Positions 4,363 through 30,871 of a stretch of 46,224 bases of DNA are shown in pieces. Under the pieces are notes generated by a model. The model did not search any database, was not told the DNA's origin, and saw nothing but the letters and a program-made list of their open reading frames with translations. The translations under genes and the position numbers were made by a program. Each line of letters starts with the position of its first letter. Position 1 is the first letter of the stretch. The DNA comes from Klebsormidium nitens (taxonomy: Eukaryota > Plantae > Klebsormidiophyceae): positions 1 through 46,224 of the forward strand of contig DF237602.1 of NCBI GenBank assembly GCA_000708835.1, given 5' to 3'.

Positions 4363-5858
4363 TCAAGCTTCCTCCACCTTGATTTCCTCAAGGGCACGAA
4401 CGTACGCATCCTTCTGTCTACGAATGAGAATCGTTGTGACGGACGCCAGAACGCCTACGAGCACAGCCGAAGATGACACTACCACACTCAAAGCTTCGAC
4501 GGGATTGAAAGGCGGGGCGTCTGGTTGTGTTGCCGTTTGTAGGATGGTTGCCAGGGGTAAAATCAGGGGTGAGGCATACGAAAGGGCGAATCCCGATTGC
4601 GGAAGAAGCTCCCACTCAGGGACGGGGACGGGCAGGGGAAGCTGCCGGGGCATCGGCAGGATGACGATCCGTTTGAAGTTGAGACTGAAGGCGAACGGGT
4701 GGAGTCGCCAACCGAGGCCGGGGCACAGCGCGCGGAGGAGCGCCGTAAGCAGAGACAGGTCTTCGCGCGTTTCGCAGGGCGGTAGTTTCTCCCGGGCGGC
4801 TTCTTCTAGCACCTTTAACAGGGATTGTGTCTCGGGGACCAGGCTCCCGAGCAGCGCCAGGGACAAAGCGGCTTCCCACCAGACCGCGGTAGGGCCTTGT
4901 AGAAGCGGTGTGAATAAGGGGTTTGAGCCAAGGGCGATGGCGAGAAGGGGCAGGGGCTGTGGAAGGGCGAAGAAGGAAATGGCCAAAAGCAAGGGATGCC
5001 AATCCCATGGGGCGGAATGCTCCAATAACCAGTAAACTTGGTATGCTAACCCGCCGTAAACCCCTGCGGTGACCGCGGCTTTTAGCAGCGTGGTCGCCGT
5101 CCTCCTGGCTCCAGTAACTAGGTAGGACGTAACCAGGTCGGATGAAGTCTGGTTGACGTCAAATTCAGTGCCCGGGACGAAGGGACCCGGCTCGGGGAAT
5201 GTCCACTGAGAAACCTTTGTGACCGAGTTGTAGTAGAAGGTCAGCTCCTCGGTTGGGTCGTACAGGTTGTGCCATTCGGGGGAGAGCTCTGGCTCACGCA
5301 GCTGGAAGTGGCCCTTCTTGGCACTCACTCCCAGCTGCCAGTACAAGCCCACACATTCGCAGCGTCTATAAGCAAGCGCCAGGGCTCTTGTGTGACTACC
5401 TCCAAGTCGTGAATCAGGCTATCGAAGCTTGTTACAACGATGAAGAGATAGAGAAAGAGCCAAGGAGAGGGGCCCCAGTCGGTGCTGGGGGACTTGAGAG
5501 GGAACCGTCTGTTCTGCTTGGAGACGCTCGGCGGGCCTTGGAGGTCGAAGCTGCTGAGCCGGACTCGCGTGAGTTTGGTGGATCTTCTCAGGGTCCTGAA
5601 CATGAAGCTGCATCTGGCTTCTCTGCTGCCGAGAGTTGCGGATTGACCGAAATGCTTTACACAAGGAGGACCGCGTGATACTTGCTGTGTCTCCCTCCGT
5701 TGGACTTGGAAAGTCATCGTTTGTAGGCTGCAGCAAGCTTCAGTCTTCAAGGAACCTAAAGACCCTGAGCACGTAGCAACGCTCGAAAGTGGGGTTAGAA
5801 CAACGCCCTTGTAAGCAAGCAAGACTGGCTGTGTCAGCATTTGAGTAAGCGCAGCCAT
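4363..5858 (-). CDS. WW-domain multi-pass membrane protein, paralog 1 (intronless; apparent 1-nt frameshift at 5348-5350; ~498 aa if repaired)
   Basis: ORF 5325..5858 (ATG 5858; ...PSTDWGPS) joins ORF 4363..5352 (WW motif LSPEWHNLYDPTEELTFYYNSVTKVSQWTFP; LPQPLP; LCPGLGWRLHPFA; PVPVPEWELLP) if one base is added to the run at 5348-5350. Collinear with paralogs 2-4. Confidence 0.8.
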
Positions 5859-6395
5859 CTGACCTTCTGCAAGTTACTTCCTGACCACAGCGGCGGCAGA
5901 GTCAACTCTGAATCCCCGTTTTTATGTGTCTACTAGGCAGAAACGCAGCTGCTTGCGGATGGACGATGCTTTGCGAATATGAAAGGCGCAGGAAGATGAA
6001 ACTTTGTGCCAAAGAGCCTCGTCGCGCATGCCGCGCGGCCGCGCTGATTCAAGCCTGTGGAAGGGTTTGGCGAGGTCGACGGTGAAGCCATTTCCGTGTG
6101 CGCGCGCACCAGTGCGCACATGCCACTGCCGCGCGCCTGAGGGTCGGCGCGGCCGCTGAGTTGGAACCCGGCCGGCGCGCCGCCTGGGGCCAGACTCCGT
6201 TCTTAAACCTTCGTTGCGTCACCAGCGTCCGCGTCACATCATAAACAGACTAGGCCAAGGCGCCTGATCAGTTCACAATCAGCAGCCCCAACATTGAACA
6301 CACGTTTTCTGACTTTTATTATTCTTGCCGCCAGAAAGGAGACGCCGGCCACAACGTCATATGAGCAACCTGCTCGAAAGAAAACTTAGGCAAGC
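5859..6395. promoter_or_regulatory. Putative shared promoter of head-to-head paralogs 1 and 2
   Basis: Short intergenic gap between divergent starts, with a GC/CpG-rich core (about 6020-6200; repeated GCGCGC and GCGGCCGC). Confidence 0.4.
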
Positions 6396-8108
6396 ATGTC
6401 TTGCAGTCTGCTGTATGGAGGCGCTGGTGTGGCGATCATGCGGAGCACTTGTATCAGGTCAAGGGTAGGGAGGAGAAATCAAAAGATGGACAAGAGTCAC
6501 CTTTCAAGGCCGTGCAATGAGGCTTTCTCTCCGCCTTATGGAACTAGCATGAAAGTTGGCTTTGTTCAGCAAAGCAGCTATTATATATATTTCATCATTA
6601 GCTTTCAGGGCTCTTAAAAAACCGATGAACGGAAGGGGTGTCACAGATGGGAGAGTCCAAGGAGCAGGGACTTGCAGGCTTCGAGGTACGAACGGACGTC
6701 AGATGAGGTGCGGCTGGCTCTCTACTGCTGCTCAGAATAGGGGACACAGCTCCGCGGCATTGACAATCACTAGGCTGGTGCTTGGTAGTCCCAACTGCAG
6801 CGAAAATCCGCTAGAAAAGCCACCAGCTGATCCCCCGAGCTCAGATTGGGGACTTTCTTTCTTCACCGTCTCCTTCTTCGGCGTTTCTCTCCTTTCGGCG
6901 GCTCTCATGTTCTGCGCCCGCGACGCGACCCTCTTCACTCTCGCGCTGATGCTCGTGCTGGCAGTCGTTTCGTTTACCATCGCTTATAATCCGCTCGAGG
7001 AAGACGCAAAGAAGGGCGAGTTCCAGCCTCGACAACCGGGGCTTCCACCCGGGTGGCACAACCTGTATCACCGTGAAGAACAGCTCACCTTCTACTACAA
7101 CTCGGAAACGAAAGTCTCCCAGTGGGAGGCCCCCGAGCTTCTGATCTCGCCAGCAGCCCCTGACGTCAGCCAGACGTCAGACGATCTGGTAGCATCCTAC
7201 GTTGGTCACGCGATAGAGAAGCTGTGCTCTGTTCTGCTGAAGCTCCCGTCACCGTTGGCCTGTATCTTGCCCCCCTGTACGAAATCCTCTGGCTTCTGCG
7301 CCACGCTGGACGCTTCGGGGTTTGGACGTCCGGGGTTTTAGCCGCGGCCGCGGCCGCGCTGCCGCAGCCCCTCCCGGCGCTCGTGCTCGCGCTCAGTCCC
7401 CTCCCCTTCGGGGTGGAAAGCAGCACCTTCGACTTCTTCCAATGGACCGTGACTGTCGGGGTTTTTTGGGAGAGTGTTCTCTGCCTGGCGCTTCTTGCGA
7501 GCATCGGCTATGAGATCCAATCGCTTATGGCGACGTTGAAGCGCGCGGCGCGCGCGCGACTGCCGCCGTGCGAACCGGCCGGGGACTCGTCTCTCATCAC
7601 CAACCTGTTCTGCGCGTTGTGCCCCTCGCTCGGGTGGAGGCTTCACCCGTTCGCGTTTGGCCTCAGCTTCCGGCGGATCGTCATTTTGCCGCTTCCCAGC
7701 AAAGTTCCGTTTCCGGTTCCGGTCCCTCGGTGGGAGCTTCTACCGGGCACTTTGGTCGCCTTTCTCTACATTGCCCCCATGATTCTTCCACTGGTGAGGT
7801 GCCTTGCAGCAGCGGCCGAGAGGTCCCAAGCACTTGGCCCGAGCACCTTGCTTAGAATTCTGCTGTCGTCGCCTGTCGTTTACGTAGGAGTGTTTGCGGC
7901 GGTTGCAACGGCGCTCATTCGCTGGCAGAAAGAGGCGTACGAAAGAGCGCTTGCTGAGTTTGAGAGGACGAGTGAACGGACGGAACTGCAGGAGACAATG
8001 TCTGGGAAGATTGAGGGAGGTGAAAGTCGGCCTGGGGTTTTGGATGATGCTTTCGAAAACCTGCTGAAGAAGGACTTTGACGCGAGGCTAGGTGGTGGTG
8101 GTCCGTAA
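6396..8108 (+). CDS. WW-domain multi-pass membrane protein, paralog 2 (apparent 1-nt frameshift at 7245-7247; 5' end uncertain)
   Basis: ORF 6556..7341 (PPSSDWG; WW LPPGWHNLY...FYYNSETKVSQWEAP) joins ORF 7224..8108 at CTC CC GTC, where LKLP-VTVGLY matches paralog 3 LKLPVTLLLY. Possible first exon 6396-6457 plus intron 6458-6608 (phase-compatible, ~520 aa); alternative ATG at 6625. Confidence 0.8.
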
Positions 8109-8955
8109 ATTGGTTATACATCGAGGATCTTATTCGCATGTTTCAGATGCGACGTACAACGTCACATCTTAAGTGAATAGCTCCGCTCTTCAATGCTCGT
8201 ATACTTTGCTGCTGGGAAATCTGTTACATCTCACGCTTTATGCACGATTGGAAAGGTTCACGAAGTCAGTCTTTTTCTTTTGTGGAGGGCAAACCTGTTG
8301 CGTGGATTCGAGTTGGTTCATTGCATCAATTGCAACTAAGAAGGGGGCTGTTTGATTTGTAGAGGGTTCAGAGTGTCCGTACTCAGCATGCTTGCAGTCT
8401 GTCGTCTCGAAAGATTTTCACCTTTTCTTTCTCGGTGCTTGGATGCGCAACATCATCTTGGCGCGTGTCACTGATTACGTGAGTCCAAACTTTCTTCAAG
8501 CAATAGGAATCCAATCCGCATGCAAGCGAAAGACATGCGAGCCTGGCAAACCGCGTATGCAGCTTGGACAAAAGCGACCAGTGTCCAGATAACCGTCCCT
8601 TGATTCGCACAAGCATGACGTCTTTCTAGCTAAGTGCATCCAATCGAGATACTTGAGTATAACATGTCAACTTGGGTGCCACGTAACGCACTGGCGTCAA
8701 CTTTCTGAGACCATAGGTAGACAGTCGCAAATCATGCAGATTTACGACATGCGCAATTTTGCCGGCGGTTTCCATGTGGAGCTACTTAGCCGCCTATGTT
8801 TCGTGCACTTGCAGATTTTACGACTTGCTGTCTTGAGAGCTCATGTCTCAATCGAATCTGCCCTAGCTCACTATGGACACGTAAGCAACACAAGATGCAC
8901 ATTATGATTGCTTGTTGAGGAACTCAACAGCATCCAACTTGGGTGATGACTGGCG

Positions 8956-8984
8956 GCGCCAGTGGGCAGGCCCCCCACTGGCGC
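8956..8984. repeat. GC-rich 11-bp hairpin
   Basis: gcgccagtggg (8956-8966), 7-nt loop, cccactggcgc (8974-8984). Confidence 0.8.
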
Positions 8985-9644
8985 GGCCGCGCGCCCTGGA
9001 GGTGATGCAGACTACACAGCCGCGATAATATTTGTCGCTGGATGCAGTGATGCACATCATTGGGGGCCCCCGTTCATGTGTCTGATGATCACGTACGGGC
9101 AGAACGTTAAGGAATGGGCTCTTCTGAAGGTTCAAGGTTGAGACAAACATGTAAGACATGATAATACTCTGATGTGTGCTTCAACGGCTTGAATCGACTG
9201 GATTTTCGCAGCAGGAATTTCCACCGTTACGCTACGTTAAGGATCTTTCCTTGTGAGAACGCCACCGAAGCAAAATGTTTTAGGACGTAAGCCATATGGG
9301 CTGTCAGAAACAATTGAGAGGACGATGCGTCTTTCTTACAACAGAAACGTTACCAAATCTTGCAAGCTTGCTGCATTATACCTATAACCACAGCTCGTCC
9401 AGTGATGCAACTTCCCTACAGCCTGTGACTCGCATAACTGAGAATGCTAGTTCAATCAAACGCTTCAATACCATACGGCTGACCAACACATTGTTTACAG
9501 CGATTCAACATGCACACGTCTTTCATTTCCAGTGACTAAATCTCGAGCCTTACGACTCAACCTGAGTATTGCTTACGTGTCTTGAATTGTACACAACATC
9601 TGAATCTTATCTGACGAAAACTCTGATCAAAACAGCAACACAGT

Positions 9645-11945
9645 TCAATCGTCCTGGGGCCCGAGTCTTTTGTCGAAGTCGTCCTTCCACCTCTCCTCAA
9701 TATCTTCCAACAAGAGCAGCGAATTCGACTGGTCTGCTTTCTCCTCCTTTCCTAAGTTCTCCCCAGCCGCTTTCTCGCGCTCTGATTCCCATTCCATCAA
9801 CGCACTTTCGTAAGCTTCCTTCTGCTTCCGAATCAGTACTGTGGCCACGGATACAAAGACCCCCACCCACACAGCCGGAGACGAAATCACCGCTTCAATG
9901 AAGACTCCCGGTTCAAGGGCGCCTTCTGTCGCCTTCGAAACGACGTTGAAAAACTTCATGTAGGCACTCCGTTCAGGCGCCTGGGCGACCTCTATCGGCG
10001 TCGAAAGCGCTCTTGCCAAGGGGAGCACCAGGGGTGAGGCGAACAAAAGGGCGACCAACGACCCCGGTAGAAGCTCCCACCGCGGAACGGGCACCCGAAG
10101 CGGAACTTTGCACAGGAACGGAACGATCACGATCCGCTCGAAGTTGAGGGTGAGGGCGAACGGGTGGAGCTTCCAACCGAGCCCGGGGCAAAGAGCGCAA
10201 ACTAGGTTGGTGAGAAAAGAAGAATCCGCGGTCATCTTGCGGGGGGGGAGTCTCGCTCGGGCGGCTTCGTCTAGTGTTTGTATCAGGGACTGAACCTCTG
10301 AGGCGAGGCTTCCGAGCAGTGCCAGGGACAGGAAAGCCTCCCAACCGACCGCGACTGGGCCGTCGAGGAAAGGCGTGATTGCCGGTTGGGATCCCCCGAG
10401 AGCCAGGATGAGAAGCGGGAGGGGCTGGGGCAGGGCTGCAAAAGAGGGGTAATAAACATGCGTTGAGAAATCGTGACTTTGTTGGGTTAAGACGCTGCCC
10501 AGGGGGACGGGCTGGGTTGGTTTGAGGGTTAAGGTGTTTACGGTGCGGAGCACGTTAACTTCGGCTTTGGTTTACTTCGTCTATGTAAGCCCGGAGAATC
10601 TAAAGTTTGCTGAGCGGTTTCACACGGCAGCTACTTGTGGGAGTGAGAGGAGGACCCGCAGAATCGTGAAAGCCTTGGTTTCTGTCGAGACAGGAATCGG
10701 CTCCAAACTTTCACCGATAAGCGCGCCAAACCACTTACATGAAGCTCAAAATCGGAGGAATCCGTTCAGCATCTTGTCGTCCCACAGCGGAAACATACAA
10801 CGGTTCAGCCGAATTGGGGCGGCATCTAGCCGGAATCTCAGCCAGGAAGTCAGCAGCCGGGTTGATCTGACTCGATCTAGGCCACGGAACCGAAACTTAC
10901 CTGCAACAGCGCTCGCCAGAAGCCAGAAACTCCACCCCCCAATCGTATGGTCTTTGTAGAGCTGGATCAACCACTGGAGCTCGAAGAGAGGGGCGTAATA
11001 CAGCAGCAATGTGACCGGGAGCTTGAGCAATGCGGAGAAGAGCTGCCCGGTTCCGTCCGCCAGGTACGAACCGACCAGCTCGTCTGACGTCACGCTGACG
11101 TCAGGCTCGTCCGGGGGCGTCGGGAGGTCGGGGTACTCCCACTGGGAGGCTTTAGTGACCGAGTTGTAGTAGAACGGGAGCTTCTCTCGGGGGTAGTACA
11201 GGTTGTGCCACTCGGGGGGAAGCTCCGGTCGCCTAGGTTCGAACTGGCCCCTCAGCTCGGCTTCGATTCCGAGTATCTGATAAACGGGAACCGCGAAACA
11301 TGCAATGATGGCTAAAAGGAAGATGAACGCGCTCATGTCCTCCCTGTTGGTTGGGTCGATTTTTCCGGCGATGCACAACTGGATGAGGAACCAGGTCATA
11401 GCAGCTGTGAGGAGGAACGCAATGAATGTGCCTGCAGAAGGGCCCCAATCTGTCGGCGGGGAAGAGTAGGGGACTCTCTCCGGGGGCTCTGGCCGGCTTG
11501 CCTGGGCGCATATGAGGCGTCTCTTTGCCCTGGTACTGCCAGACTGCCTTCCCTGAAGTCTGTTGCTGTGAAATCCTCCCAAAGTGAGGCTTTGATGCCC
11601 CTCTGACAAAGTTCTGAAGCCTGATGGCATGCGGACTATATCTGCTTTGGTTGGATGAACTATTCCTAGCTGGACTCGCTGATGACCTCCCCTGAAGCTC
11701 ATGTGGTTTCCTCGTGCTTTGCAGATGTTAACATTCTGCCCTGCCCTTGTGCAACTCCACAGCTTCTGACGACTTGCAACCCCATGGAATGCGCTGTCTT
11801 GATCAACCAGAGCGACCACCCTACAACGACGCTGGCCACTAGTGTGCAAGCTTGCTGACACAGCGGCTGTGCTGATGCTATGCACACTCCTGGTTTGGGA
11901 GCCAGCAGACACGTGGCCCCCCAGGGCAGCACCTAAAATCACCAT
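9645..11945 (-). CDS. WW-domain multi-pass membrane protein, paralog 3 (exons 11945-10901 and 10435-9645; 611 aa)
   Basis: ATG 11945; donor GCAG|GTAAGT at 10900 and acceptor TTTTGCAG| at 10436; phase-1 join restores SAVA-ALPQPLP as in the paralogs; WW LPPEWHNLY...YYNSVTKASQWEYP; 1836 nt in frame. Confidence 0.9.
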
Positions 11946-12323
11946 GAGAGAAGGCGCTCTACGCAAATACAAGCCCGCAATAAGCAGTGGCCGTCGTTTC
12001 TGCCCGCATCGATCCGCCTCTCTTCAAGAAGAAGCGCCAAATGCTGACTTCTTCAGCTCTCAAGTCTAGGTATGCCATAGTTTCAAACTAGACGCACTCG
12101 ATCGGCTACGTGCGGCGCGGTCGCGTTTCGGTAACGTCACCGGGCAGGGTTTGGGGTTTGTTTTGACGACCCGGCTACACGCGGCCGCCCGGTGACGTGA
12201 CTAAGCGGCCGCGCGCTCGACGGTGGATTGCAAAATCTTAAGTAGAGTCCATGGTAGTAATACAGAAACGTTCAAGTTGTTTGGCAGAGAGAAGGAAACT
12301 GAAGAGGCGCCACTTGAACAGCA
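11946..12323. promoter_or_regulatory. Putative bidirectional promoter of paralogs 3 and 4, with a 12-bp inverted repeat carrying TGACGT motifs
   Basis: 378-bp gap between divergent ATGs; acgtcaccgggc (12134-12145) and gcccggtgacgt (12187-12198); CpG-rich with two GCGGCCGC. Confidence 0.5.
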
Positions 12324-13985
12324 ATGGCCGGCGTCAGGCAATCAGCCGGAGCAACACCAACAGTGCTGACTACTAATCTGACGTCAGTGGAACGCTTCCA
12401 CAGAGTACGTTCAAAGGGGCCTGAGAGTGGCCCCTTGAATAGACAGGGAGCCTTGGTTTCGTGTCAAGGCTTCAGCAAAAAGGCCGCAGCAACATCAGCC
12501 TTTTGCAATCGGCAGAGGCTTGCTCCTTTAGGCAAACCTGGAGGGCTGATTCTTTTGGCTCCTTTTGGCAGTGTTTCCGCTTCAAATTTTAGCGAGCATT
12601 CACTGGAGAAGCAGGCTGATCCAATTTTGGCGCGGCGGTGGAAATCAAGGGGCACTCATGGGTCGTCTGGCGGGAACAACGTTTGTTCAGACACTCCAGA
12701 GGACCAGCAGCCTTCCTCCCCTGTCTCTGCACAGCCTTCCCCAGGAGGACCACCCCCTTCCAATTGGGGCCCCTTTGTCCCGGGCCACCTTTTCTTCATT
12801 GTTTGTCAGATCTTGCTGTTGAATTGGACGAGATTGGACACTTCCGTAATCTTCCTATTAGCATTTTACACGCCGCTTTTGTTCATGGGGATCGCTTATG
12901 GGCTTCAAGAGGATGCTAAAAAGGGACAATTCTTGCCAAGGCAACCGGGTTTGCCCCCACACTGGCACAACTTATACGACCCCACCCAGAACCGGACCTT
13001 CTTCTACAACTCTCGCACCAAAGTTGCTCAGTGGGCGTTGCCCGGTGACCTCATTCACCCCTCCACTGACGTCAGCAGGACGTCAGACGAGCTCCTCGTG
13101 TCTTACTTTCTCCAGGGTGCGAGAGAGCTCGTGGCTTCCATCTTCAAGCTACTTGGAACGGTTGGGTTATACGTCGCTCACGTATTGGAGCTTGCGTGGA
13201 GCATAATGCTGCTTTGGAATATACTCGAGCAATCTTGGGTGCTCCAGGGACTCCTACCGGTCGCTTGTCTCGCCCTGCCTCAACCCCTGCCAGCTGTCAT
13301 CCTGCTCCTCGGAACATTTCCCGTGAGGCTCGTAGTAGATAACGTTTCCGCCCAGTCTCTACGACTCGGTTGGGAAGCCCTCCTGTGCGCGGCGCTCCTT
13401 TTCAGTCTCGTTCCCGAGGTTCGGTCGTTGCTGGCGACTCTGAAGCGGGCGGCTCGAGCCAGGTTGTCGCCGTGCAAAGCAACCGGGGACGTGAAGCTCC
13501 TCACCGACTTCCTCTGCGCTTTGTGCCCTGGGCTCGGCTGGCGGCTCCGCCCGTTCGCTCTCCGTCTCAGCTTCGATCGCTTCGTCCTCGTTCCGCTGCC
13601 CTTCAGAGTTCCGCTTCCGGTTCCGGTCCCCGCCTGGGACCTTCTCCCGAGGTCGGGGGTCGCCGTTCTGCACGGCCTGCCCTTCGTTTTACCCCTGGTA
13701 AAAGCGCTTGTGGCAGCGAGAAAGGGAGACCTGTGGCTCACCCCGGGCGCTTTTGCGAAGTCGGTTATTTTGACGCCGTCTGTTTTGGTGGGCGTCTTTG
13801 CGGCGTTGACGGTGGTTTTCATACGGAGGAAGCGGGAGGCATATGCGATTGCTCTAGAAAGAGTTAAGGGGGCCCAGCTAAAACGAGAGAAGGGGGATGA
13901 GGTGGTGCTCGAAGATCTGGAGACGAAAGTTAAGAGGGACTTCGACGAGAGGCTTGGATTTGGAGACAGTTTATTCTCTATTTAG
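12324..13985 (+). CDS. WW-domain multi-pass membrane protein, paralog 4 (intronless, intact, 553 aa)
   Basis: Single ORF: Ser/Arg/Ala-rich N-terminus, PPSNWGP, hydrophobic segments, WW LPPHWHNLY...FFYNSRTKVAQWALP, LCPGLGWRLRPFA, C-terminal DFDERLG. Confidence 0.9.
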   Translation: MAGVRQSAGATPTVLTTNLTSVERFHRVRSKGPESGPLNRQGALVSCQGFSKKAAATSAFCNRQRLAPLGKPGGLILLAPFGSVSASNFSEHSLEKQADPILARRWKSRGTHGSSGGNNVCSDTPEDQQPSSPVSAQPSPGGPPPSNWGPFVPGHLFFIVCQILLLNWTRLDTSVIFLLAFYTPLLFMGIAYGLQEDAKKGQFLPRQPGLPPHWHNLYDPTQNRTFFYNSRTKVAQWALPGDLIHPSTDVSRTSDELLVSYFLQGARELVASIFKLLGTVGLYVAHVLELAWSIMLLWNILEQSWVLQGLLPVACLALPQPLPAVILLLGTFPVRLVVDNVSAQSLRLGWEALLCAALLFSLVPEVRSLLATLKRAARARLSPCKATGDVKLLTDFLCALCPGLGWRLRPFALRLSFDRFVLVPLPFRVPLPVPVPAWDLLPRSGVAVLHGLPFVLPLVKALVAARKGDLWLTPGAFAKSVILTPSVLVGVFAALTVVFIRRKREAYAIALERVKGAQLKREKGDEVVLEDLETKVKRDFDERLGFGDSLFSI

Positions 13986-26624: not shown

Positions 26625-29600
26625 TCAATGACCGCAAAAGGCCAATGCGTACGCCAAGGTTGCTGCCTGGGCACTCTCGTACGCGGCTTTAGAACCAAAG
26701 TCGGTGCTGCAAATGCGGACGCAATTATCAGCATATTGACGTCACAATGCGCGCACTGATTCACAACGTCACTCGTCTGCTTCGAATGATGATCTCGAAC
26801 CAATGCTCAGTCAAAGAACTAGTTGATAGCAAGCCTCCGACACTCTTATGAGTACCCAGCTGGAGACCCATCTCAAGAGCGCTCTGTCGAAGGAACCTGC
26901 CACTTACGAGAAGAAGAGGCGTCCGACCCGTGCTGTCATGCGGCATCGGGCCGCCGCAAATGACGTAGGCACCACATCGCAGGCTTCGCGGGTGCGTACG
27001 TAAAGTTCGTCGTCACAGGTAGATTTGCTGGCGCCAGGAGTTGAGTAGCACACGTCATGGAAGTTGCAACCAGGTGCGAACAAATCGCTGCTTCCAGCAC
27101 CACCGATGAAGTTGATAACCTTTCCCACGAGTCCTCCTGTATCACAGCAAAGAGCGGATAGCGAATAGCGGTCAGCGGATAGGGGATAGCGGAGAGCATC
27201 GGAAAGCGGTTCAGCGCGTGGCTGCAAGAAGCATCACTGGACGTAATGACGCCGTCTGTTTAAACCGACAAAAGAGTCAGCCAGCAGTGTTGCACTTTCA
27301 CTGGATCAAAACGTTTGGCACAGTTCGTCTCACCATTGGACACCTGTCCACACGCGTTGTAGTCCCCCGGGTAAGCAGGGCACTTGACCCCAGGCGCACG
27401 AGACCGACAGCATTTGCTCCCGCATACCAGTACGCCGCCAACACTGTAGGGACAATCCTTGGAGCAAACCGGGTCTGCAGGTACACATGTACGGATCAAT
27501 CAGTGGCGAAGTGAACACGTCAATCTGCTGATTAGACCTTTAGTCAATTCCACAGCCGTAATAGCGAGCTAGAGAAATCAATTGTTGCCCGAGAGCAACT
27601 TGCATGATGGAAGTTGAACCTAAAATATATGGAGTGACCGTCTGGCAGCTTGAGATAGAGACGAAATTTAGAGAAGCGTGCACTGCGGACAGGGGCCCAC
27701 ATGGGCACCCAAAGGTGACCGAATCAATTTGACAGGCATTGACCAAGCTTTTCCTTGGTAAGAAACGTCCGCTGTTGACCTTTCAAGTACGTTACTATCC
27801 ACCGTCGTTTATTCATGCGACTGCATAGTAACTGAAAGCGCGATCAGTTTTTGTAAGAGACATAGCAAAAGTGACACGTGAGCAGGAGTAAATATGAACC
27901 AATCCAGGGCCGCCAGGCACGAGAACTGAAAACAACGGAACTTCACTACCTGACGTAGTAATGGGAGGAGCTGAAGATGGGGAAGGGAAGCCCTTTGCAA
28001 ACAGGCTGTTCGGATCGATATCCGTCTCTCCAACTGCCGGCTCCAGGGCGGAAACGAAGCCAGATGTAAAGGCCGTGAGAACCTCTTCAACGGCCTGACC
28101 ATCGACCGTTATTGTCGTCTCGACGATACTACCGGCGCCATCGTTGGTTGGCTGAATGCTCGTGATCGAGACCTGCACCGTATCGGTCGGTTTGTAGAGG
28201 GGACAAGCTTGATCCTTCATATATGTACACACAAGTTGAGGCAGCCTAGAGAAACGTTTGACCCCCGTTTGACCTTCCTTAATCTGGACGACGATGCCTT
28301 ACGCAAAAGTTTGCAATCTAAAAAGCTGGCCCCGAGGTTCCTAAAAATAGTTGCTGCCATGATGCATTCATGCATCAAGACCCCTCAGAAAGTTGCGCCG
28401 GTCAATACAAGCTAATTGCAGCCTATTTCACATTCAAAGTGCCGTTATAGGAGCCGGCCTGATTAAGGACCGTCTGCCACTGAGCCGATCTCATAGGCCG
28501 CATGATGATCAGGTCGGAACCAAGCCGATACAAAACAAGAAGCCTGAAGAAGAAAGCTTACCTCTTCTACCGCAGTCGAGGACTGCAATAAAGCCTGTAC
28601 ATAGCTCGTTTGTTTGTCAGCATCAAAGCTCTCCGGTGGCAAGGTTCTGATGGTAAATGACCCCACAATTTGGAATTGAGTATTGGAGTCTGTCAAAGAG
28701 AAGCAGAGGAATCCTTTAAAAGAGAAGCAGAGGAATCCTTTGAAAGAATCTTTTTAGGAAGGAAAGCGACGAGAGCACGGTTGAAGAGAGTAACAAAACT
28801 TGCAATCGAGGGGACGATGAAGTACGAGAGCAAGTTCATCACATGATCTGTCTATATAGTCCAACGTGGCCGCAACGGTATCAAGACCAACTGAATTGAT
28901 TCCGAAATCTACTTGCCGTCACACCGCATACATTTTCGTGACGAGGAACTTCAAACAACATGCTTTACAGATGTGATCATCTGTTGCTAGATCATTGTGC
29001 AGATTGCGCAAGAGGTGGCTGCTGGTGAATCGGACAGCAAGAAAAGGACCCACCTGTAGGCCTAGGAGTTGAACTTTTTGGGGTCGGGGTTGGAGTGACT
29101 CGAGTGGTCGGAGTAGGAGTAGTGGGCGCAGGAGTCGTAGGCATGGGAGTCGTGGGGGCGGGAGTTGTGGGGGCGGGAGTTGTAGGAGTAGGAGTTGTTG
29201 GGGTGGGAGTTGTTGGGGTGGGAGTTGTTGGGGTAGGAGTTGTTGGGGTAGGAGTTGTCGGGGCGGGAGTTGTTGGGGCAGGAGTTGTAGGAGCGGGGGT
29301 TGTTGGGGCAGGAGAGTTTGGGGGCAGAGTTGTGGGGCTAGGAGTGGCTGGCGGGAGGGTGGTAGCCAGCGGGGCCAAAGTGCTTGGGGTGGGGGTGGAG
29401 ACTGTTGGCTGGGGAGTAACCGAGGCCGTAGGACTGCCCGTTGTTGGAATGGGAGACACTTTTGTTGGACTGGGGCTGGTAGACAGGGATTGGCAAGAAG
29501 GGGGGTTGGTCGGCGGGTTAGCACATTGATAACCTGAGGCACAGCAGAGAGGACCTTGACCCTCCGGTCCATAGCAGGGAGTGGCGCCGTCTGCGGAGCA

Positions 29601-30722
29601 AGAGACTTGCCCAAGCGAAGCGGCAGCGGTCCCTGTAGGAGTTGGGGACTGAAGCGGGGAGCTTGGTGCCGAGCTGGATGGGCCCCCTAGATTGCTTTTG
29701 ACGCAAGCAGGGGGGCTGGTGGGTGGCGAAGCGCACTGATACTCTGGGCTTATGCAGCAGATCGGGCCCTCCCCCCCTGGCCCATAGCACTGAGTCGTCC
29801 CCATATTGCTGCAAGGAACCTCCCCTGCGGATGCAGTGGCGCTTGGAGCAGGGCTGCTTCCGGAAGCCCCAGGAGGGGGAGGAAAGACGGGGCTGGGGTT
29901 ATCGACACGTGGGTAGATTGCCTGACAAGAAGGTGGGCTCGTTGGGGGGGTGGAGCACTGGAACAGCGGACCCGCACAGCATACTGGGCCTTCTCCCATT
30001 GGGCCATAACACGCACTTGCTCCCTCCGCTCCACAAGGAACCACGCCCTCACCTGGGGCAGCAAGCCTAGAAACCAAACGGACAGGTGGTGTGTCCAGCG
30101 CGTATGAGTTTTTCTCAAAGCAGTAGCCTGCTGAAGGGGCAGGACACCGAATGAAACCGTCGGAGTTATCCCCTGATCTCACGCACAATGGTTCACCGTC
30201 TGCTAGCACGCAACACTCGAAACCAGGCTCGCAGCACAGTGGAAAGAAGTTCTTCCCCCCCACGCATTGACGTTTGGGAGGCAGGCACTTTGGGACGCAG
30301 CCATAACCCCCAAGATCGCAGTCATAATCCGGTAGGCAACAATCAATGGCGTAAGAAGGGGGTGGGCCCGCCGAAACAATCTGGCTCGAATAGCAACATG
30401 TTGTCCCGGGTGGGCAACCAAAGGTATCGTCCGGCTGATGGCAGCACTGATCCGTGGCATATATACGGTTTGCACCACAGCATACTTCCCCAGGGAAAGC
30501 ACAAGCAAGCCGGAGCAAACCGTATCGGGTACCCAAGCAGCAGGTTGCTTCATTAAGACAGTAGACATCGTCTCGGATGTCCACACTGGTGCAGCATTTT
30601 GAATCCGGATTTAATGCGGCCTGCTCGCATCGGTCGACCCCTTCAACTAAAAGCAAGACAGTGACCAACGTAACCCAAAACAGGGCCTGCTTGCTGCGCA
30701 TTGTGTTGGCTAAGCTGCTCAT
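26625..30722 (-). CDS. Secreted mosaic protein: Cys-rich region, 3 CBM1-like modules, Pro/Thr stalk, SEA-like segment, secretory phospholipase A2 domain (exons 30722-29054, 28689-28562, 28172-27950, 27474-27334, 27136-26908, 26706-26625; 823 aa)
   Basis: Signal peptide MRSKQALFWVTLVTVLLLVEG. Five GT-AG introns with matching phases (2472 nt). C-terminal NACG...FAPGCNFHDVCY...KSTCDDEL...AC...FGSKAAYESAQ matches the sPLA2 His-Asp motif (group XII/conodipine/microbial type). Confidence 0.82.
27147..27215. repeat. Degenerate heptamer array (GATAGCG-like) just upstream of the exon 5 acceptor
   Basis: gatagcg aatagcg gtcagcg gataggg gatagcg gagagca; on the minus strand it contains the branch-like CTGAC. 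Confidence 0.6.
28695..28741. repeat. 24-bp tandem duplication of the polypyrimidine tract of the exon 2 acceptor
   Basis: aaagagaagcagaggaatccttt at 28695-28717 and 28719-28741; acceptor AG ends at 28690. Confidence 0.9.
29103..29312 (-). repeat. Coding 15-bp minisatellite, 14 units, encoding (P[A/T/M]PTT)14
   Basis: Seen directly in the ORF 28992..30782 translation and DNA. Confidence 0.95.
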
Positions 30723-30871
30723 ATGAATGCCAGGCCAATGCAACCTAGTCTCAAAGATGCCCGAGATTTCCTTCGGGTACAATCACCTGCCCTTCTCGGG
30801 TCAAAGACAGCAAAGAGATGCGCCTGCTTCAATGTCCACCAAGCTGCCCAATGGCCCCTCAATGGAATGTC

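Follow-up and report, generated by a model that had tools for sequence, protein, structure and literature searches.

A single WW domain set among membrane segments in a Klebsormidium nitens gene family

The WW domains of PRPF40A (FBP11), TCERG1, Pin1 and Ess1 belong to soluble nuclear or cytosolic proteins, in which they occur in tandem or together with a catalytic domain; to our knowledge the module is regarded as cytosolic or nuclear, and none has been described in a plastid to date. Here we describe a family of proteins from Klebsormidium nitens (Klebsormidiophyceae) that instead carry a single WW domain between membrane segments, four copies of which are encoded between positions 4,363 and 13,985 of contig DF237602.1 (GenBank assembly GCA_000708835.1). 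The contig was analysed over its whole length of 46,224 nucleotides, which we refer to as the window. The family's WW domain resembles those of PRPF40A, TCERG1, Pin1 and Ess1 in its length of 31 residues, both Trp, the closing Pro, the central Asn and the aromatic second strand, but departs from the PRP40 and Pin1 type in an invariant His after the first Trp and in Ser at the position of the usual second-strand His.

An analogy from general knowledge is offered by the PY-motif channels and transporters regulated by Nedd4, in which a contact between WW domain and proline motif at the membrane surface controls a polytopic protein, as may also be the case here. In the Nedd4 system, however, a soluble ligase carries the WW domain and the membrane protein carries the Pro motif, whereas the membrane proteins of the K. 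nitens family bear a WW domain of their own and have neither a HECT nor a C2 domain. Another fusion of a WW domain with a polytopic membrane protein is perhaps represented by a cluster in the ESM Atlas that was automatically named 'WW domain-containing protein', all members of which carry PKD_channel and most of which come from rotifers. This cluster differs in that WW appears in its name and not among its listed Pfam families, its membrane domain is unrelated (template modelling score, TM-score, 0.26), and it is of animal origin.

The K. nitens family joins a classic eukaryotic docking module to a membrane domain that has neither detectable relatives among 1.84 billion proteins nor a fold match. 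Klebsormidium is placed close to the base of the lineage leading to land plants, and membrane proteins specific to its lineage may relate to life on land surfaces.

WW domain and C-terminal membrane block

Hydropathy profiles and structure models place the parts of the protein in the following order: an N-terminal extension, a PPxxWGP segment, transmembrane segments 1 and 2 (TM1 and TM2), the WW domain, a linker, helices H3, H4 and H5, a conserved loop of ~70 residues that includes a beta-hairpin, helices H6 and H7, and a tail that is first basic and then acidic and helical. An initial annotation made without database searches (the sequence-only reading) had proposed an unrecognised family with a WW domain in a loop of a multi-pass membrane protein, followed by a C-terminal block outside characterised families. 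The WW domain does lie between hydrophobic segments, and the other parts of this proposal likewise held in the profile, sequence and structure comparisons given below.

Three of the four copies score above the Pfam gathering score for PF00397 (26.9 bits; scores of the individual copies are given in Table 1). The closest sequences in the PDB are PRPF40A (expect value, E, 7.9e-9), then TCERG1 and NEDD4L. Among the complete family members, the first Trp, the central Asn and the closing Pro are present in 15 of 15 and the second Trp in 14, with Phe in its place once; the aromatic strand is essentially invariant across the 15, and the two Trp are spaced about 22 residues apart, the same as in Pin1. 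A 419-residue AlphaFold model (predicted local distance difference test score, pLDDT, 80.1; predicted TM-score, pTM, 0.69) has the WW strands at residues 80-85, 90-95 and 100-102. When this model was searched with Foldseek, its WW domain superposed on the Pin1 WW domain (4gwt) with a root-mean-square deviation of 0.9 Å over 32 columns (TM-score 0.88 by target) and on Ess1 with 1.2 Å over 36 columns. WW domains were the only credible matches of the search, the remainder being generic helical hairpins that align with TM1 and TM2. These results indicate that the WW domain is genuine and PRP40/FBP11-like in sequence.

The C-terminal block of about 300 residues, folded alone, was modelled at a pLDDT of 81.7 and a pTM of 0.70. 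Within it, H4 is broken by LPQPLP, which is invariant across the aligned family members, and H5 begins with an invariant Glu and ends before an invariant AAR. The segment LCALCP was considered as a CxxC redox motif and rejected, as the second Cys alone is nearly invariant. Scans of all family pieces against Pfam and NCBIfam returned WW only; for the C-terminal block, Pfam gave sub-threshold matches (SLATT_1, 16.3 bits against a cut-off of 26.3) and NCBIfam gave none. The best match of the WW-free block in a profile search of the PDB had an E of 1, and a feature search of the ESM Atlas returned no usable match. Fold searches of the block against three libraries gave at best a Z-score of 6.2 over 88 residues (VIA, wide search), a TM-score of no more than 0.23 (ESM Atlas) and an E of 0.16 with a TM-score of 0.16 (Foldseek, PDB). 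These scores are within the stated background for helical proteins, and the absence of a match is not proof of a new fold.

Loop 5-6 carries the strongest positive charge of the protein (net +3.2). H3 is the least hydrophobic of the segments (mean 1.43, minimum 0.85, compared to 1.78-1.86 for the others) and contains an internal Arg or Glu in several members. Charge counts favour a layout with six membrane-spanning helices: if H3 does not cross the membrane, the tail, the large conserved loop 5-6 and the WW domain face one compartment, and this arrangement is the best fit to the positive-inside rule. The PPxxWGP segment and the WW domain are on the same side, since they flank a two-helix hairpin.

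Family range, selection and expression

We assessed the range of the family with an exhaustive profile search of the 1.84 billion proteins, using a profile from which the WW domain had been left out. The search recovered 23 proteins, all with E ≤ 1.6e-14 and with no tail of weaker matches, and returned family members only. All species-labelled matches among the 23 are from K. nitens, and include KFL_000100580, KFL_000100610, KFL_001120250 and KFL_002450160 beyond the cluster; the other matches are Logan or JGI sequences. In every case with a complete gene model or complete underlying DNA, the WW domain and the C-terminal block are found together. A literature search by organism and WW, gene identifier and architecture found nothing relevant, and no proteomic or localisation paper on the family.

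In K. nitens the family numbers at least nine copies. The sequence-only reading had taken it for a four-gene cluster, and at least five further copies on three other scaffolds fall outside that description. In the tree, the four cluster genes group with their relatives in a clade supported at 100/100, within which paralogs 1, 2 and 4 each pair at 100/100 with an ortholog from SRR23617307, and the head-to-head layouts of paralogs 1 and 2 and of paralogs 3 and 4 are kept in this second species. Synonymous divergence (dS) to the second species is about 0.45-0.85 (~0.5). The ratio of nonsynonymous to synonymous divergence (dN/dS) for paralog 4 is 0.41 overall, 0.35 in the C-terminal block, 0.18 in the transmembrane hairpin and WW domain, and 0.71 in the N-terminal extension. 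Values of 0.30 and 0.29 were obtained for paralog 2 downstream of its frame break and for the C-terminal block of paralog 1 downstream of the break found in the relative. The cluster is thus older than the species split and under purifying selection. Two copies stand in tandem at a second K. nitens locus (DF236959.1), alongside decayed fragments, and one of the two has a bridged one-base gap; the family as a whole is a tandem array that gains and loses copies; the breaks in the cluster are young.

Expression was assessed from the RNA-derived contigs of three RNA runs over positions 6300-12250, with contig word-depth serving as a rough ranking only. On this scale, depth was 118-744 for paralog 3 and 2-9 for paralog 2, a ratio of 13-370 across the three assemblies. 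Depth was zero over the intergenic stretch 8290-9085 in two of the three runs, which argues against carry-over of DNA. A search of transcriptome contigs for the exact product of paralog 4 returned no record. The strong expression of one copy and the purifying selection on the intact ones indicate that the family has a function.

Candidate role and alternatives

The N-terminal extension of 140-170 residues has a net charge of +8 to +16 and contains 15-21% Ser+Thr, 7-12% Ala and 4-8% Asp+Glu. Its first 60 residues hold 10-13 Ser+Thr, 5-12 Lys+Arg and 2 Asp+Glu, and have no hydrophobic start resembling a signal peptide. This composition and the fast evolution of the extension (dN/dS 0.71, 48% identity to the ortholog) would fit a transit peptide, and the extension may well serve to target the protein to an organelle, perhaps the plastid. 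More tentatively, it may be a true transit peptide, with the WW domain working inside the plastid, at the envelope or thylakoid surface or in the stroma, and with a membrane domain of new fold that would have arisen in the Klebsormidium lineage. If the protein is indeed imported into plastids, WW-mediated recognition would extend to a compartment from which it is not known.

Taken as a whole, we lean with modest confidence towards the explanation that the family consists of membrane-tethered WW docking modules on a new membrane domain, probably in an organelle. Held at the membrane surface, the WW domain would bind a proline-rich peptide on that side, provided either by a partner protein or by the PPxxWGP segment of the family itself; a contact between PPxxWGP and WW could mediate self-association or autoinhibition. 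Through such contacts the WW domain may recruit partners to the new membrane domain, or may regulate it.

Several points weigh against this explanation. The docking mechanism is drawn solely from the general behaviour of WW domains, and the model gives the PPxxWGP segment a pLDDT of ~60, with no confident contact to the WW domain. The second-strand His, which is usual in WW domains that bind PPxY, is replaced by Ser in the family, so the class of ligand is not given by the sequence. If H3 were to span the membrane, the WW domain would be on the side opposite the big loop and the tail. The N-terminal extension is also long for a transit peptide at its 140-170 residues, and could instead be a cytosolic disordered region, which would look similar.

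Alternative explanations were weighed against the same evidence. The sequence-only reading had favoured a plastid hetero-oligomer of the four paralogs in which each WW domain binds the family's own LPQPLP, PVPVP and LCPxLGW motifs, which we now regard as quite improbable. The strong conservation of the Pro-rich motifs, the retention of the four genes in a cluster across species and the resemblance of their N-termini to transit peptides would all fit such a complex, but the motifs make poor WW ligands: LPQPLP is in the hydrophobic middle of H4, PVPVP is in a confidently modelled beta-hairpin, ALCP is in a short helix, and none is a free polyproline. An obligate complex of four is unlikely for other reasons as well, with paralogs 1 and 2 frame-broken, a 13-370-fold difference in word-depth between paralogs 3 and 2 that argues against fixed stoichiometry, and extra copies at other loci, so that there is no fixed set of four. 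It is somewhat less improbable, though still unlikely in our judgement, that the activity resides in the C-terminal block, which would be a small transporter or channel of a new kind built around the H5 Glu and the Pro-kinked, discontinuous H4; the WW domain would then be only a regulatory handle, comparable to the Nedd4 WW domains that act on PY-motif channels but fused in cis. The invariant Glu at the membrane edge, the LPQPLP break in H4 and the AAR after H5 are consistent with this, as is the fact that the best of the weak fold matches are transporters or membrane-domain proteins (ClbP, Z 6.2; ASCT2, E 0.16), and the PKD_channel cluster of the ESM Atlas hints at WW-channel fusions, though WW is not among its listed Pfam families. 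All of these fold matches are, however, within the noise for helical bundles, five or six helices without an internal repeat are few for a transporter, and the exhaustive search found no sequence relative of any kind.

We regard as highly improbable, and for paralogs 3 and 4 as largely refuted, the view that the cluster in its entirety is DNA in decay or without function, or an artefact of annotation. In favour of this view are the breaks in two of the four copies, the further broken and decayed copies at the second locus and the confinement of relatives to one lineage; against it, dN/dS is 0.18-0.41, with the lowest value over the transmembrane hairpin and WW domain, the open reading frame (ORF) of paralog 4 is still open at a dS of ~0.5, three independent studies show paralog 3 to be spliced and strongly transcribed, and orthologs pair at 100/100 in the tree. 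We give equally little credence to the idea that the frame-broken copies are fully translated, through a -1 shift of the ribosome or slippage of the transcript at a Pro codon. A -1 shift after the same Pro codon would restore the protein in both paralog 2 of K. nitens and paralog 1 of the relative, at the second locus a CCN codon precedes a third such break, and both the downstream dN/dS (0.29-0.30) and branch lengths no higher than those of intact copies would be expected of translated sequence. The sites lack a canonical slippery heptamer, however, and short runs of C or G are ordinary hotspots of deletion; paralog 2 has a second, unrelated N-terminal lesion and weak transcription, as a pseudogene would, and the break in paralog 1 follows a Trp codon, where re-pairing is impossible.

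Cluster layout, gene models and scaffold

The four diverged paralogs are arranged on the K. nitens scaffold as two head-to-head pairs, 1/2 and 3/4, and the ORF list places all four where the sequence-only reading had put them (Table 1). The gap between the genes is ~540 bases in the first pair (5859-6395) and ~265 bases in the second (12060-12323), and each pair probably has a common bidirectional promoter. Paralog 3 is transcribed far above paralog 2, although both sit in head-to-head pairs. Paralogs 1-3 have 42-50% identity to paralog 4 downstream of the WW domain. Alignments confirmed the motifs that had been listed as shared, namely PP(S/T)(D/E/N)WG before TM1, the WW domain, DVSxTSDxLVxSY, LPQPLP, ALCPxLxW, PVPxW and IRxxxxAY, and added a further conserved C-terminal tail, LEDLE...DFDxRLG, which is missing from paralog 1. 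Two hydrophobic segments ahead of the WW domain, proposed for all four copies, are present in general, but paralog 1 has one clear N-terminal segment and its second is interrupted by the frameshift. Similarly, all four genes of the proposed cluster are there, but only paralogs 3 and 4 are intact, as paralogs 1 and 2 carry frameshifts.

Table 1. Coordinates of the paralogs and of their main features in the window
Feature	Position	Strand	Remarks
Paralog 1 (KFL_006530020)	4363-5858	-	Frame-broken; without the conserved acidic C-terminal tail
WW domain, paralog 1	5194-5286	-	Pfam PF00397, 28.7 bits
Paralog 2 (KFL_006530030)	6396-8108	+	Two disabling lesions; weakly transcribed
WW domain, paralog 2	7042-7134	+	Pfam PF00397, 36.2 bits
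Paralog 3	9645-11945	-	Intact 611-residue product once spliced; dominant expressed copy; annotated N-truncated (P0009)
Intron, paralog 3	10436-10900	-	465 nucleotides, GTAAGT..TTGCAG, phase 1; joint 10435/10901 in RNA runs X5, X9 and X13
WW domain, paralog 3	11130-11222	-	Pfam PF00397, 23.9 bits, just below gathering score; all signature residues, column-for-column alignment with the others
Paralog 4 (KFL_006530050)	12324-13985	+	Single-exon ORF of 553 residues, intact
WW domain, paralog 4	12951-13043	+	Pfam PF00397, 31.5 bits; three-strand model, Pin1 superposition
C-terminal membrane block, paralog 4	13056-13982	+	H3-H7, conserved Cys/Pro/Trp loop, acidic tail

The intact copies differ from their public gene models. 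The annotated model of paralog 4 (P0001) has 480 residues, with an upstream exon substituted for the conserved N-terminus (12324-12560). The best matches of the 553-residue ORF are the hypothetical proteins KFL_006530020, KFL_006530030 and KFL_006530050. This ORF is likely to be the actual gene, because the ortholog in the second species (P0002) aligns with it from residue 1 in a single frame, at 67% identity. The mRNA of paralog 3 spans about 9283-12059, and its splice joint is present in contigs of three RNA runs from three different studies. The spliced ORF of 611 residues agrees with the annotation P0009, which starts 182 residues late. Transcripts that retain the intron (10412-10930) occur in all three RNA assemblies at ~3% of the spliced depth.

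Paralogs 1 and 2 are recently broken copies. In paralog 2, indels after the ATG at 6396, including a 4-nucleotide AT-rich insertion, lead to a stop near 6615, and a 1-nucleotide deletion at 7246-7250 gives CTC-CCG-TCA in place of the CTC-CCA-GTC of the intact ortholog (P0004). An RNA-derived contig of 700 nucleotides covers 6750-7449 without a gap, across the deletion, so the break is real and transcribed and is not removed by the intron of model P0006. An assembly error was considered as the cause of this frameshift and rejected, as the independent RNA-derived contig is colinear over the site. The second lesion and the low expression favour a pseudogene over recoding, and paralog 2 is probably a young one. 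An AT-rich, microsatellite-like insertion (TATATATA) at 6575-6600, within the N-terminal coding part of paralog 2, is missing from the ortholog and counts as one of the two disabling lesions of this copy. The TM1 part and the WW part of paralog 1 are set apart by a gap of one base within a run of G at about 5346-5352. The annotated 65-nucleotide intron at 5335-5399 is best read as a bridged frameshift, because the corresponding stretch of the relative is open in one frame and encodes a conserved peptide. In the public K. nitens models, invented introns thus bridge frameshifts in at least three members (P0007, 5335-5399; P0006, 7200-7400; P0012, on the scaffold of the second locus, 10794-10906), and the N-termini of paralogs 3 and 4 are wrong.

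The same Pro codon, in the context (C/A)TC-CCG-T, is one base short in K. nitens paralog 2 and in paralog 1 of the relative (about 7950, minus strand of the relative's locus), and the second K. nitens locus has a third one-base break, this time after a different CCN codon (about 10810-10830); a -1 shift restores the conserved protein in all three. Gene conversion was rejected as the source of the common site, as the flanks are paralog-specific. The three breaks probably reflect a deletion hotspot in short C-runs, which does not fully explain the coincidence. The decayed fragments of the second locus (DF236959.1, 17819-18960 and 21436-21648) have 33-44% identity in several frames, and one of them runs opposite an annotated methyltransferase gene, with whose span it overlaps.

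Scans of the 46,224-base scaffold for tRNA genes and Rfam families gave no match, and neither did a Pfam scan of six other large ORFs on the scaffold; an ORF of 596 residues at 28995-30782 (minus strand) matched no Pfam family at E ≤ 0.01. Long ORFs are scarce on the scaffold, as expected of an intron-bearing eukaryotic genome.

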